From positions 62,001-126,000 of the forward strand of contig JALMLS010000231.1 of assembly GCA_038496445.1 (NCBI GenBank): a DNA stretch of 64,000 nucleotides, written 5' to 3'. The DNA comes from Trichosphaerium sp. ATCC 40318 (Eukaryota; Protista; Tubulinea). Each line of letters begins with the position of its first letter. Within the stretch, counting starts at the first letter, position 1. The notes beneath the pieces were generated by a model. It was not told the DNA's origin and made no database searches. It saw only the letters and a list, made by a program, of their open reading frames with translations. Positions 6,060 to 59,998 of the stretch are shown here, one piece after another. The translations under genes and the position numbers were made by a program.

Positions 6060-8540
6060 ATGTCCTCTCTAACGAGTGACGAGGTTAATTTGTTGGTGTT
6101 CCGTTACCTCAAAGAGTCTGGTACGCTACATCCTGCCCTACGCCTCTAATGTTGCCTTCTAAGGGTTTAATCATTCTTCATACACTTTTGGCCATGAATG
6201 TGGACTTCTCAACAATTTAACGCCGCCAATCGAACTAGAACGGGGCAAGTTAATCAGTCTAATACAAAAAGGTATGCTATACTCAGAGATCGAGGAAAGT
6301 GTCGAAAAAGTACGTGAATGGCGTCTGCAAACACGCTCGCGCTTAAACAAGGGTTCAAGAAATTTTTAGGGTAGCTTGAAGGTTGATGGCATGCATGTTG
6401 AGCCAAAACGCACGCCACTGCACAAGGAGAAAGCACATAGAAGCAAACCTCACAGTGGTGCGAAGTCAATTTCAAAAAATTCAGAAACATTGAGGCTAAA
6501 ACGAAGAATTGACGCCTTTGATTAGAACCTGTCGATACTATGGATATTGAAACTGATTCACCAGCAATAGTAGAGCCTGGTAATGTTGCTTTTTTGTCTG
6601 GACATAGTTCTGAGGTACGCTGAATGCATCCTGACATAAATTCCACCATTTTCTTTTATTAGCAGAAGAAACCTAATGAATACTCGATTTATAATTAATT
6701 GTATTAGGTACTCATGTGCTCTTGGAGTGCGGATGATAAATATCTCGCTTCTGGGTATGTTTATGTAGCGTAAAACACATTGATAAAGAATATATCTCGA
6801 TTATTTTTTAATGGTTGTTTTTAGCTCTGGTGACTCCACAGCGCGAATATGGAAGATACCTTCGGATTTATGTTCAAACCCTAAGTCTGCTGGTGTTGTA
6901 TCAAAGCAAGCTTTAGTACTTACTCATCCAAGTAAGCCTACAGCAGTCATCAAAAAAGTGACTACGCTGGACTGGAATGTACGTTTCTTTCCTTTTGAGC
7001 CAAGTCTTGTTTGTATGCTTCTATTGAGTCTAAATGATTCACTTTTGCGTTATAAACGCGGTTGATCACTAAATTAACATATTGTAGAGAGCAGGAACAC
7101 TATTAGCTACAGGAACATATGATGGAGTCGCTCGTGTTTTTGATCCTAATGGAGTTACACGCTGTACTCTTGTAAAGCATGCAAAGCCTATTTTTTCCCT
7201 TAAATGGAGTCCAACAGGTGAATACTTGCTTAGTGCTAGCGCAGATAAGGCAGCAATAGTATGGCAAATACCGTACGTGGTCGTTTGGCTTCAAACACTC
7301 ATGACTTGTTTGCATTGAATTTAATTTTTATCTTTTTTTGGGTGACACACTCGTTGTATCTTACTTTTATGTCTTATAGAAGCGGTAATATAAAGCAAAT
7401 ATTCAAGTTCCATGATGCACCAACATTAGATGTTGATTGGAGGTATACATTTTGTGATTTTTTCTCAACTCCAATGTGACACTCAAATTGCAGAAGTTCT
7501 CTCATTTAAAAACCTAAGTTGTTTCTTGTTAACAATGTGTTGTGTAGGGATTCGAACACATTTGCAAGTTGCTCTTCGGATAAATTAATATATATTTGCA
7601 AGTTAGGCATGGATGAGCCTCTTATGACTTTCAAAGGACACGAAGTAAGTCAATGACATCACATTCGTGTTCAAAAAAAAAAAAGAATTTGGTGTTAGAG
7701 TTCCAAGACTCTCAGAAAAACATCCCTCACCTTTTCTTGTAACTCCAAGTGATGCTAACATATTACCACTTCCAGAATGAAGTTAATGCTGTACGGTGGG
7801 ACCCACGTGGACGTATTCTGGCTTCGTGCTCTGATGATAAAACAGCGAAATTATGGCTAACTGACAGGTATAAAATCCCCTTTTGTTAGTTACCTGCATC
7901 TGATTACTTTACTTAGAAGCGAAGCTTTTGCAACACTACAGGATCATCAGAAGGAAATTTATACTATTCGTTGGAGTCCCGAACCTACTGATGGCGTACG
8001 AATATTGTTGCACTCACTGTTGTATTTTTTTCATTCTGTTGCATAACCTTGTCGTTTGTTTCCGAGTATCTAAATTTTTGTAAAGCTTTTGGCAAGTGCT
8101 TCATTCGACTCTACTGTTCGTCTATGGGATGTAGAAACTCATCAGTGTAGACATACACTTGTCCATGAAGGCACAAAGAATGGGTACAAGATTTACTTTT
8201 TTTTATTAGTATTCTCTGTTCATTTCTCATTACTGATACTTTACCTGTAGAAAAGGTGACCCAGTTTATTCCATATCATTCAGTCCCACAGGAGAGTATA
8301 TCGCTAGTGGCTCATTTTCAGGATGTTTGAATATTTGGTCTGTCAAGGTAGTGATTTTTTTTGTTTTTTTCGGGAATTCTCTTTTTTCTTTTTTTTGTTA
8401 ATGTCGCACAGACTGGTGAACGCGTAAAGACGTATCGTGGTAAAGGTGGTATTTTTGAAGTGTGCTGGAACCACAACGGTAATCAAGTCGCTGCATGTTT
8501 TATGAACAATATAATATCAGTTATTGATTGTAGAATGTAA
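6060..8540 (+). CDS. TBL1: TBL1/TBL1XR1-like LisH + WD40 corepressor subunit; multi-exon
   Basis: [21 protein letters not shown]|FNHSSYTF (LisH), followed by WD motifs [45 protein letters not shown] and GGIFEVCWN. Confidence 0.93.
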
Positions 8541-9116: not shown

Positions 9117-9814
9117 TCAGCGTTGTTTAGGTCTTCCATGCAGTACAACACGTGCAAGACGTAAATGTTTGGGAGTCAGTGTAACAGTTTTATCCACAAC
9201 GGTGAGGTTGTGCGCAACTTCGAAGAACTTGATGAGGTACGCTTCGGATGCTTCTTGTAAAGCTGCCATTGCTGATGCTTGAAAGGCACCTTGAAATCCT
9301 AGATCCTGAGCTATCTCACGAACTAATCTCTGGAAGGGAAGCTTTCTCATCTCAAGGTTTGTAGTTTTGACATATCGTCTGATCTCTCGGAGGGCAACTA
9401 ACAATTTTTTGAGATGGATGTTCCAGAAGGAGCGATAGAGGTACCTGAACCCGGTTTAAATCTAGCTTTAGGTATCTGGGACGTTTTTGTGACAGTTGAA
9501 GCCACTAAAGTCTTTGGAAACCCTTTGTTTGCGTCGTTTATATCCAAATTCGCTAATTTAGCGTTCAGAGTAAACCTATCGTCCTGCGGTTTGTTGTAGA
9601 GCGTTTTCAGTTCATCCTGGATTGTGACATGCACCAAATGGAAGGGACCGTTCTCAGGTGTAGCTATATCGTGTATATCATACTTGTCATCTATTAACAC
9701 ATGCTCAGGTGGGCAGTCAAACGCTTTTGTAATGTCATCAAGTTGTAGCGGCGTAGAAAACGTCAAACTAGTGCTATTAAAAGTTACAGTGTAATCACAC
9801 GTATTGCTTTCCAT
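9117..9814 (-). CDS. Divergent histone H3 variant with a ~120-aa non-histone N-terminal extension; one intron (9398-9444)
   Basis: A GT..AG intron joins the two track ORFs into KARFKPGS|VALREIRRY...[15 protein letters not shown]...[10 protein letters not shown], which is an H3 fold. There is no ARTKQTARKS tail. Confidence 0.88.
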
Positions 9815-10117
9815 GAATTGCGTTTAAAAAATAGCGCTAAAAAATTAAAAGTGACGACCCAGTATCGTCGCACAAGTGCTCCATATGCCATGCACGTTAA
9901 CGCAGCGAACACCGACTCAAGCTCGACGCGTATATGAAGGAGTGCTGTCATTATTGACTGCCAGAACGTTGCACGTTTGTTTACCTACGTGATGTATGGT
10001 AGGATTCAACACATTTGCAACTAGTCACTGCTTCCTTGAAGCGTAAAAAAAAACAGCAAAAAAAAAAGAGCGTCAAACCACTTCCAGTGGGACACAAGCC
10101 GCGATATAACAACCACC

Positions 10118-10315
10118 ATGTTTGAACGTTACTGGCGCTACCAAAACCATCCTGATGTACAACTTAAATTCAACCTCAAGACAGTTCTACCTGGATTTCG
10201 GTCAGCCCTTGCTGTATTTGTAGTGTACGTTACTGTCGAGAAGAGCTGGAACTATTTCTATCCAAAACACCACCACGGCCACGACCATCATCAGATAGAG
10301 CATGCCGGTCACTAA
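10118..10315 (+). CDS. NDUFB3: Complex I accessory subunit B12 (NDUFB3-like)
   Basis: WRY..LPGF..A..VF..YV..E pattern, one TM segment and a His-rich C-terminus. Confidence 0.75.
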   Translation: MFERYWRYQNHPDVQLKFNLKTVLPGFRSALAVFVVYVTVEKSWNYFYPKHHHGHDHHQIEHAGH

Positions 10316-28921: not shown

Positions 28922-29785
28922 TTTTATTCTAGTAGCGAATCTTTGAAGGCCAAGTCACTTTCTTTCTTTGCTGACTGCCGAACGAGTCCACTTGCAAGAG
29001 TTCTAGAGCTGTAGGTACAATTTACAAGTCACGAAAGCGTACTCAACTCAGAAAAGGCGTCTATGAATGAAAAAGGTTATACATCGTGCAAGGTTGATTT
29101 TTTGACGACTATGTATGTATTCGCAACGTGTAAGTCGTTATTGTTTTTTCTTTATTGTTGGGTCTGACACTGCGACTGGCGCAGTGCCAACTAGCAAAAA
29201 TTGAACTCCAGAGGAACCCGTATTGGATTCTCTTACAAAGGCCACCAACGCACAATGTGCAATGCGGGCTGTGCCAATGTATTGCCACTGCCTACTTGAT
29301 CACAGTGACAACGAGTCAGGTACGTAATCGAATAGTGAAGCAGAAATTATTTTGTGCAAAATACACAGAATATTATTGTGGTATACGCGTGTTCATTTGT
29401 AAACAGGGACCAAATTCGCCCTTGACGTGCGAGAGTTGCTTTTAAAGCGTCTTCTGACGATCAAAGTACTCCTGAGGTCCTTAATGCAAAAAGAAGCTTC
29501 CTGCGCACCAGCACCTGCGCCATACTACCGGTAAGCAAATACGTACAAAATTAGACGTCACGCAAAGCTAGGACTTGAAACACCTGCACGCTGTTCGAAC
29601 ATCTGAATGCTTGCTGACTCACAACGGAAAAGGCCTTACAAAATAACAAATTGACTTGCCAGACCATTGGCAATAAATAAAACAAAAGCGTTCAAAAAAA
29701 TAGTTTATTATCATTAATTGGCGTCACTATGTGACAAATTGTCAGCGCCTATAGACACTTAATACAGCTAGGACATTGTTATCGT

Positions 29786-58399: not shown

Positions 58400-59746
58400 A
58401 TGTATAAGCCTGAACCATGTAGGTACTTGATTTGTTCGTTATTTGCAACTATTGTGGCGATTTTGCTTGTAAGCATAGCAAGCTTGTATAGTATGAACCA
58501 ATATCTACACAAACGCCTTGCGAACAAAGATAGTGTTGAACTGTGGAAGATATCATCAAAAGAGCTGTTGGAGCTTGGAACAGCAACAGATTATAGTATA
58601 ATGAGCAAAGACGTTATTCTAGCATCTGAAACACTATCAGATTTGTTTAACATTGACGACATTGAAGAAACTGAATACCACACAGGAATCGTTTTGAACA
58701 TGATGACTGTACCACTAAAAGCGCCGTTGTTTACTGAGAGAGTCATAGACAGACTGAAAGCCTTTGGAGCAGTATCAATACCCTCACTGGTTCCTAAAGC
58801 CTTGTGCAAAGATGCTGCTGAAGCTACAGTCATGGAGATACTTCATACAAGGAGAAAGTTTGGAGATATTGGAAAAGCAATGTACAGGAAGGATTTACCT
58901 CTTGACTTTGAAGAACCTTTTACAAATGTTCTGTCGGCAACTGTAGAGAATTTAAAAGAATCTCTTATTGATATGCTCGGATTAGACTCCAGAATGGTTG
59001 AGTTCGCTGCTTTAGACTCATTTCCAGGCGCAGAAGAACAAGAGGCACATCCAGATGCAAGAATGAATGAGATTGAAGACTATAATAACTGGGGATTGCT
59101 TATATCCGGATATATTTATTTAGATGATGTGACAGTTGATATGGCACCTCTTGAGGTTTGGCCTGGGACTCATACTCTGTTTCACTTTACTATGCAAGAA
59201 TTTATAAGCTATTACCCAAGGAAACCAGTAAGGATAGCTGTACCTGCAGGCACTGTTGTTCTATTTGATTCAAGAGTTCATCATAGAGGTACTTCCAATA
59301 CATCGCCTAGCATAAGACCTGCCTTGTACTTTTCGTTTCTTGAGTCCCGAGATGGTAAACAAGCTCCTAAAGGTCCTACATATACAATGAGGCAAGATTA
59401 CAATACTGCGACTACTTTGGAGTCAGTATTAAAGAAAGAGTTTCCTGTGAGCTCAAGAAGTGTTGAAGGAAAAAATGGCGTTAATGAAAAAGAGATTTCT
59501 TGTATGAAAGAGTTAGAACCGTTATGCAATGAAGCTGACGGGAAAACTGTTCTACAACCAAAGAAATGTTATGATTGTTTAGTTGGTATCTATAAGGAGT
59601 CTGATGATGTTGAGTGCTTTCATTTGTACAGTGAACGATTTTGTAAGATTGGTATCTTTAAAGATGATTTCGAGTTCAGATTCTCTTGGGGTTCTTTGAA
59701 TGTTACAGATCCAAGTCAGGTTGAAACAATAAAAAAAGAGCTGTAA
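58400..59746 (+). CDS. Intronless PhyH-family Fe(II)/2-oxoglutarate dioxygenase with an N-terminal signal anchor and a Cys-rich C-terminus
   Basis: QEAHPD (HxD), LDDVTVDMAPLEVWPGTH, GTVVLFDSRVHHRG..N...RPALY. Confidence 0.88.
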   Translation: MYKPEPCRYLICSLFATIVAILLVSIASLYSMNQYLHKRLANKDSVELWKISSKELLELGTATDYSIMSKDVILASETLSDLFNIDDIEETEYHTGIVLNMMTVPLKAPLFTERVIDRLKAFGAVSIPSLVPKALCKDAAEATVMEILHTRRKFGDIGKAMYRKDLPLDFEEPFTNVLSATVENLKESLIDMLGLDSRMVEFAALDSFPGAEEQEAHPDARMNEIEDYNNWGLLISGYIYLDDVTVDMAPLEVWPGTHTLFHFTMQEFISYYPRKPVRIAVPAGTVVLFDSRVHHRGTSNTSPSIRPALYFSFLESRDGKQAPKGPTYTMRQDYNTATTLESVLKKEFPVSSRSVEGKNGVNEKEISCMKELEPLCNEADGKTVLQPKKCYDCLVGIYKESDDVECFHLYSERFCKIGIFKDDFEFRFSWGSLNVTDPSQVETIKKEL

Positions 59747-59749
59747 TCT

Positions 59750-59998
59750 GTGATGGATTACTTGTTGTTTATTCAAATTTATTGCAAACCTCCACCAATG
59801 GAAACTTTGTTTCACAAAAAGATCTGCAGTCATAACATTTTTCTTGCATTGCACTGTAAACCACATGATCGCTATGCGCTAGAGAGCTACCTGTCAGGAA
59901 AAGATGTCAATTTGGCTAGTGTTTCATCACTGGTAAAGTTTTTAAATAGTACTGCATGTGTACATACTATCAATTTGAGCAGTTGTAGTAAGAAATAA
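59750..59998 (+). pseudogene. Relic of the F-box/LRR family
   Basis: Contains PMETL and VHTINLSSC fragments only. Confidence 0.4.

Follow-up and report, generated by a model that had tools for sequence, protein, structure and literature searches.

An amoebal histone H3 variant encoded by two exons, with a recoded H3:H3' face and an acidic, probably folded, non-histone head in place of the tail

The gene described here encodes an H3-like protein in which the tail is missing and the face that joins two H3 molecules is altered, and the question it raises is whether this is a real H3 variant and, if so, what kind of histone it might be. All coordinates are positions in the window, which is the whole 64,000-nt stretch of DNA that was analyzed, and the gene lies on the minus strand. 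The first-pass annotation had placed the gene at 9117-9814. H3-like coding sequence is indeed present there, but the interval is not a single continuous open reading frame; it is made up of two exons, and the frame break and the intron that accounts for it had been missed. Straight translation from the ATG at 9814 ends after ...SISKNC at 9398, and the open reading frame of the histone fold lies in a different frame. When a 47-nt intron is excised, a coding sequence of 651 nt results, which specifies a protein of 216 amino acids (Table 1).

The exon boundaries can be followed in the sequence around the intron, which reads ...AAA CCG GGT TCA G before the donor and TT GCC CTC CGA GAG after the acceptor. 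The splice junction that results, RFKPGS|VALREIRRY (in context ..KARFKPGS|VALREIRRY..), is colinear with H3 from R40 to Y54, and thus the H3 homology spans the intron and begins in exon 1. The position of the acceptor is inferred from this colinearity. The start of the protein is fixed, as a TAA closes the frame three codons before the ATG and no AG lies in the interval.

Table 1. Features of the H3-variant gene in window coordinates, with the divergence of each structural element of the histone fold
Feature	Coordinates	Strand	Remarks
Exon 1 of the H3 variant	9445..9814	-	ATG at 9814; residues 1-123 and first base of codon 124
Intron of the H3 variant	9398..9444	-	47 nt, GT..AG, GTACCT...TTGTTAG; excision restores the frame and H3 colinearity
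Exon 2 of the H3 variant	9117..9397	-	H3 V46 to C-terminus: alpha-N, alpha-1, L1, alpha-2, L2, alpha-3; stop TGA 9119-9117
Candidate beta-grasp segment, residues 1-66	9617..9814	-	Acidic, order-prone; no HMM or sequence match
Linker, residues 67-113	9476..9616	-	Mildly basic towards its end; AF2 pLDDT ~30
Diverged part: H3 positions 101-135 and 3-residue extension	9120..9233	-	H3:H3' four-helix-bundle face
Presumed promoter, H3 variant and NDUF_B12 gene	9815..10088	.	~275 bp, head-to-head
alpha-N			2/11 positions differ from H3 majority
alpha-1			0/15 positions differ from H3 majority
Loop 1			6/8 positions differ from H3 majority
First half of alpha-2			2/15 positions differ from H3 majority
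Second half of alpha-2			12/14 positions differ from H3 majority
Loop 2			3/6 positions differ from H3 majority
alpha-3			6/11 positions differ from H3 majority
C-tail			3/4 positions differ from H3 majority

Evidence for expression was taken from assembled contigs of public runs. Run X3 is RNA-derived, because the 64-nt intron of the neighbouring WD40 gene is removed in it; this GT..AG intron (8346-8409) is absent from contigs of runs X1, X3 and X4, which confirms its splicing and marks all three runs as cDNA. A 367-nt contig of run X3 aligns to 9445-9809: it ends at the predicted donor of exon 1 and, on the other side, reaches to within 5 nt of the ATG; its two extra letters do not align to the window. 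The first-pass annotation had suggested that expression be looked for, and this contig demonstrates that exon 1 is transcribed, exon 2 being uncovered. The end of the contig at the donor supports the donor position and fits with splicing to the predicted acceptor. Three differences separate the contig from the window, counted by codon by eye: P76 and A31, both synonymous, and D27N. Among the assembled contigs of public runs none covers exon 2 or spans the junction, which may be due to filtering or to branching of the assembly graph at conserved histone sequence. Additionally, the H3 variant was not seen in three other RNA-type runs, although its neighbours were, and its expression may be low or conditional. 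Taken together, the colinearity with H3 and the contig end at the donor strongly imply an mRNA in which exon 1 and exon 2 are joined.

The gene lies in an ordinary cellular neighbourhood, where it is flanked by a WD40 gene on one side and an NDUF_B12 gene on the other. The last exons of the WD40-repeat gene, which is TBL1-like by eye, are found at 8089-8540 (+), and the Pfam WD40/beta-propeller matches on these short exon pieces are weak; a probable further intron of this gene begins with GTAC, as does the intron of the H3 variant. On the other side, the gene for NADH dehydrogenase subunit B12 (NDUFB3; Pfam NDUF_B12, E 7.6e-10) occupies 10089-10315 (+) head-to-head with the H3 variant, and the 5' end of its cDNA is placed at 10089 by a template-switch oligo in run X1. 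Nothing points to a viral origin of the H3 variant: there was no match to a viral or phage family, and both neighbours are housekeeping genes. Elsewhere in the window, a U1 spliceosomal snRNA gene was detected at 29164-29327 (-) (Rfam RF00003, 69.6 bits against a gathering score of 69.5).

The assignment to H3 made from the sequence at first sight is far beyond chance. Exon 2 matches the Pfam Histone family PF00125 with an E of 2.3e-23 (83 bits, cutoff 26.4), and the best 60 PDB matches listed are all H3, with an E of about 6e-24. In alignment with solved H3.2, exon 2 covers residues 47-130 without a gap; when the end of exon 1 is added, tblastn with canonical H3 extends the match to H3 41-131 at 60% identity, and the identity over the fold is about 57-61%. 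The C-terminal 97 amino acids align gap-free to H3 residues 40-131, and H3 positions 40-135 are all present with no insertion or deletion, so the loop lengths of H3 are kept. The best full-fold matches in the databases are canonical H3s, outscored only by a few H3s that contain internal duplications. Database searches were run on the two halves of the protein separately (fold relatives up to 161 amino acids), and neither half yielded an orthologue or paralogue. For the diverged half of the fold, a search limited to residues 51-92 gave no candidate relative that shares sequence words with it. By these comparisons, the protein is a lineage-specific H3 paralogue.

The divergence of this paralogue is distributed very unevenly along the fold when counted against the majority of 114 canonical H3 sequences. 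From alpha-N to the first half of alpha-2 the helices are nearly those of H3, and the changes are concentrated in loop 1 and from the second half of alpha-2 onward, with 24 of the 35 H3 positions between 101 and 135 differing from the majority (Table 1). The contrast between conserved and diverged blocks is significant by Fisher's exact test (p 1.2e-8), and such strongly uneven divergence argues against neutral decay. Of the positions at which at least 95% of the 114 H3s agree, fourteen are altered, including R83A, L103F, D106V, N108H, L109N, A111T, H113V, R116T, I119L, D123H, R129V and R131L. Both this sharp mosaic and the loss of R83 had been passed over by the first-pass annotation. R83 and R116 are minor-groove arginines that contact DNA, and both are lost. 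The alpha-N and alpha-1 residues R49, R52, R53, K56, R63, K64, R69 and R72 are all kept. The conserved part of the fold, made up of alpha-N, alpha-1 and the first half of alpha-2, holds H4 and, through R49, R52, K56, R63, K64, R69 and R72, contacts DNA at the entry and exit sites and near the dyad. K56, K64, K115, T118 and K122 are retained as well, and K79 is replaced by Gly. The diverged half of the fold contains no insertions or deletions, its helices gain no proline or glycine, and its hydrophobic positions remain hydrophobic (101 I, 103 F, 104 F, 110 L, 112 V, 113 V, 124 L, 126 L and 130 V). The fold thus looks preserved, with helix lengths and hydrophobic spacing kept, while one of its faces has been recoded.

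The recoded face is the one through which two H3 molecules meet. The H3:H3' interface involves residues 106-131, with H113 as the key residue, which forms hydrogen bonds to C110 and D123 of the partner H3 and makes packing contacts with A114, R116, K122 and L126 (PMC6795475). The interface fails to form in H113A, C110E, A114Y and L126A mutants, all of which are lethal in budding yeast, and H113D blocks tetramers and weakens Asf1 binding (PMC6795475); within the four-helix bundle, the bond between H113 and D123' has been characterized as very stable (PMC11001638). In the variant this set of contacts is not preserved: H113V, D123H, C110L, A114D and R116T are changed, and K122 and L126 are kept. 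The substitutions C110L, H113V, R116T and D123H had been read correctly from the sequence, and all four hold in gap-free alignments to solved H3.2 and to the 114 canonical H3s. The claim built on them, that the H113 contact network is altered, also stands, with four of the six H113 partners defined in PMC6795475 differing.

The first-pass annotation had proposed a tetramer-defective or hetero-pairing H3, but loss of the canonical contacts does not necessarily mean loss of the interface. In the bundle, the hydrophobic residues are either unchanged (L126) or replaced by similar ones (I130V, C110L), and a His/Asp pair is again present, now at 123/114, both of them positions in contact with residue 113 of the partner chain. 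As read from the alignment, the new contact set is more hydrophobic at its center (V113, L110, L126), and we infer that His123 and Asp114 are a relocated polar pair and that the interface has been rebuilt rather than destroyed. Since the hydrophobics are kept and the His/Asp pair is found at 123/114, a rebuilt and possibly self-specific interface is at least as likely as a dead one. In a mixed pair, the D123 of canonical H3 would face V113 without a partner, which suggests that the variant would mix poorly with canonical H3.

The N-terminal part of the protein is not histone-like. It had been noted before that about 120 amino acids take the place of the tail, and residues 1-122 in fact carry no H3 tail motif. 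The H3 tail (ARTKQTARKS...K27...K36) is encoded nowhere in the window, where tblastn with canonical H3 finds only residues 47-131, and the modifiable lysines K4, K9, K27 and K36 of the basic tail are missing from the variant. In their place are an acidic segment of about 66 amino acids and a linker of about 45. Residues 1-122 have a pI of 5.2, and residues 1-66 have a net charge of -9 and an order-like composition that resembles that of the histone fold. This acidic composition is the reverse of that of a histone tail.

The first-pass annotation had proposed that the first ~65 residues resemble a ubiquitin-like fold. No profile or sequence match bears this out: residues 1-66 have no Pfam match and no PDB sequence match up to an E of 10, and for the N-terminal region there was no PHROG match and the word-index search was empty. 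The proposal does agree, weakly but consistently, with feature, model and structure neighbours. In language-model features, residues 1-76 lie nearest to TDP-43_N clusters (0.92, 159 of 256 features shared), followed by PB1, CIDE-N, Par3_N, GT-1 UBL and KHA, all of which, including TDP-43_N, we take to be beta-grasp families. The AF2 single-sequence model of the N-domain is of low confidence (pLDDT 51, pTM 0.36; pLDDT 33 when the whole 123-aa N-terminal region is modeled) and has strands at 7-12 and 15-20, a helix at 25-32 and strands at 39-41 and 63-65, which is a strand-strand-helix-strand...strand order. The Foldseek comparison proposed for the N-terminus returned ubiquitin-like and PB1 matches with this low-confidence model as query, the best being the PB1 domain of NBR1 at an E of 0.015 and a TM of 0.61. 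The same model gave TM values of 0.60-0.64 in a structure atlas and a Z of 5.8 in VIA-align, where the usual level is 8 and the top rows were all UBL or PB1. The structural neighbours are therefore almost all ubiquitin-like, SUMO or PB1 but fall below usual significance, and it should be noted that the AF2 order and the structure matches rest on one low-confidence model and are not separate lines of evidence. On balance, we lean towards a beta-grasp fold (ubiquitin-like, PB1-like or TDP-43_N-like) for residues 1-66 as the somewhat more probable prediction. There is no Gly-Gly after the N-domain, where the chain runs on, so the domain would not be a conjugatable modifier.

Relatives of the N-terminal region were also looked for by an exhaustive HMMER search with its 123 amino acids against 1.84 billion protein representatives. 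Three matches were obtained (E 1e-41 to 1.5e-8), all giant bacterial surface proteins with 5-11 tandem Ig-like repeats (He_PIG, DUF11, SdrD_B). However, these E-values arise from summing up to 11 near-identical repeats, and homology to the bacterial proteins was rejected. Single Ig-like repeats score from -4 to 15 bits and always align to residues 44-106, across a repeat junction, in the register Y-x-I-x-D...TP-x-N...V-x-V-T-I ... A-N-x-x-x-N-D-x-x-x-G-x-P-x-T-L (exon 1, 9446-9814). Shuffled N-terminal queries score about 0 bits against the repeat proteins, so the match is not purely compositional, and a remote relation to them is possible. At present sensitivity, the N-terminal ~122 amino acids are an orphan sequence. 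A candidate paralogue of the N-domain at 59666-59920 was likewise rejected as probably due to chance, since its tblastn E is 0.05, it crosses a stop codon and it disappears without composition adjustment. This stretch overlaps the end of a 448-aa open reading frame in the region 58400-59998 (+) with a PhyH dioxygenase domain (E 6e-13), the last 26 residues of which, together with the frame past the stop, weakly resemble N-terminal residues 7-96; it would be the sole candidate paralogue of the N-domain.

From these data, we consider it highly probable that the gene is a transcribed two-exon H3 paralogue in which a mosaic of conserved and diverged blocks is combined with the loss of the tail and the gain of an acidic segment and a linker. 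What the protein does is a separate matter. The reading of its function that we prefer on the basis of its sequence is that it forms nucleosomes of its own, rather than being a centromere mark or a soluble module that binds H4 or chaperones. A centromeric role had been argued against from loop 1 and from the equivalents of Q68 and F84, and the gap-free H3 alignments bear out that loop 1 has the canonical length and that both residues are present. Centromeric H3 (CenH3) is classically recognized by its extended loop 1 and by lacking the alpha-1 Gln of H3, the Phe after loop 1 and a conserved Thr (PMC4359364); in the variant, loop 1 is not extended and Q68, F84 and T118 are all present, and by these sequence criteria it is not a classical CenH3. 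However, loop length does not exclude a CenH3 in Amoebozoa. In Dictyostelium, the validated CenH3 combines a long N-terminus of unique sequence with an unextended loop 1 (PMC2995078), which makes the argument from loop 1 weaker than had been assumed. The proposal that the variant is the CenH3/CENP-A of this amoeba, with a unique N-terminus that recruits kinetochore proteins, can draw on this precedent and also on an unalignable, lineage-specific N-terminal region of CenH3 type, given that no credible relative of residues 1-123 was found, joined to a fold about 57-61% identical to that of H3. When the diverged C-terminal half alone is compared with solved histones, its best match is an H3/CENP-A chimera, through which it shares A107, L110 and T111 with human CENP-A, at an E of 0.45, which is not significant; the change of T107 to Ala is one that we take to be CenH3-like. 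No other CenH3 of this genome is known, the view being that of a 64-kb window. Beyond the classical diagnostics, alpha-1 is identical to that of H3 at 15 of 15 positions, unlike known CenH3s, and the gene therefore looks like a fairly recent H3 duplicate and not an ancient lineage. The C-tail of the variant is also basic and not hydrophobic, and it is the hydrophobic tail of CENP-A that functions in CENP-C binding. We therefore regard a CenH3 as quite improbable.

Two other explanations were weighed. With R83 and R116 lost, H113 changed and an acidic head in place, it is just as conceivable that the protein works outside nucleosomes altogether, as a soluble histone-fold protein that serves as a decoy or adaptor binding H4 or a chaperone. 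The two minor-groove arginines lost would fit such a role, as would the four changed H113 partners out of six, given that single changes there block tetramers in yeast (PMC6795475). However, alpha-N is retained, as is every residue of alpha-N and alpha-1 that contacts DNA, whereas the other half of the fold changed freely, a soluble protein has no obvious need for these residues, and there is no partner domain such as an F-box; this makes the soluble role unlikely. The remaining explanation is a young duplicate or exon-capture chimera without function that is drifting, with a fortuitous N-terminal reading frame and a transcript that is noise. It can account for the failure to find an orthologue or paralogue of either half, for expression in one run only and at low depth, and for the change of residues that are lethal when mutated in yeast H3 (PMC6795475). 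Such a duplicate would not be expected to keep a frame of 216 codons intact across a precisely placed intron, or to diverge so unevenly (p 1e-8) that alpha-1 has no changes at all and the diverged half has neither indels nor helix breakers and keeps its helix geometry. The composition of the N-domain is order-like and not random, and two of the three strain differences are synonymous, although none of these observations amounts to a formal test of selection. A functionless duplicate is thus very improbable, though conservation of the N-terminal half of the fold could have come about by gene conversion with a canonical H3 gene instead of selection; no canonical H3 gene was found in the window by tblastn.

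In the preferred reading, nucleosomes of its own, the variant would still pair with H4 and would most likely be built into DNA-bound histone particles. The four-helix-bundle (dimer-dimer) face, which is also bound by Asf1, would have been redesigned, with V113 packing against L110, L126, H123 and D114 where canonical H3 has the hydrogen-bonded H113 and D123, so that the protein would mix poorly with canonical H3 and would either form its own homotypic particles or stay dimeric. The N-terminal segment, probably a small beta-grasp domain, would be displayed where the tail normally emerges, and the result would be a 'blank' nucleosome that carries a protein-interaction or self-association module. 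Taken as a whole, with this mechanism included, the explanation has in our judgment an even chance of being right. A more specific version, to which we give only a small chance, is a nucleosome subunit that comes pre-decorated: a self-associating UBL/PB1-like domain at the tail exit and a self-only interface, in which the His/Asp pair has moved from 113/123 to 123/114, would together define a separate class of nucleosomes that are blank for modification. If so, the protein would be an H3 equivalent of macroH2A, or it would mimic H3 ubiquitylation in a hard-wired form.

Whatever its function, the gene encodes, as far as sequence can tell, a real H3 variant with a non-histone, acidic and probably folded head and a recoded H3:H3' face. 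To our knowledge, and as far as the literature was searched, no H3 variant has been described in which a folded domain replaces the tail. The long N-termini found in CenH3s are taken to be unique sequence and not folded domains. Since the rest of the fold is intact, the gene offers a natural experiment on how the specificity of H3:H3' pairing can be recoded. It is also notable that the H113 contact network has been replaced as a whole in nature, given that single mutations there are lethal in yeast (PMC6795475). Should the protein be a CenH3 after all, it would be a useful second amoebozoan CenH3 that breaks the classical diagnostics.

Several known systems share some of these properties. The predicted strand-strand-helix-strand...strand order of the N-domain is that of the PB1 domain of NBR1, the N-terminal domain of TDP-43, the UBL of ubiquilin and FAF1, and SUMO, though the N-domain differs from ubiquitin-like beta-grasp domains in having no sequence or HMM similarity to them and no Gly-Gly, and its model is of low confidence. 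MacroH2A combines a histone fold and a globular macro domain in one polypeptide, and it resembles the variant as a core-histone fold that carries a folded non-histone domain, which in the variant is predicted. However, it is an H2A and not an H3, its domain is C-terminal and has the macro fold, and there is no homology between the two. The CenH3 of Dictyostelium (H3v1, 619 amino acids; PMC2995078) is, like the variant, an amoebozoan H3-like protein with a long N-terminus unlike known proteins and an unextended loop 1. Centromere localization has been shown for H3v1 (PMC2995078), whereas the variant is known here from its sequence; set beside H3v1 by description, the variant differs in keeping alpha-1 and half of alpha-2 identical to H3. 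The closest comparison is with the canonical and replacement H3s (H3.1, H3.2 and H3.3), to which the variant aligns without gaps from R40 to the C-terminus with identical loop lengths and with alpha-N, alpha-1 and the first half of alpha-2 nearly identical. Compared with canonical H3, it lacks the ARTKQTARKS tail and K4, K9, K27, K36 and K79, is changed at R83, C110, H113, A114, R116, D123, R129 and R131, has a C-tail three residues longer, and adds an acidic non-histone N-terminus of 122 amino acids.
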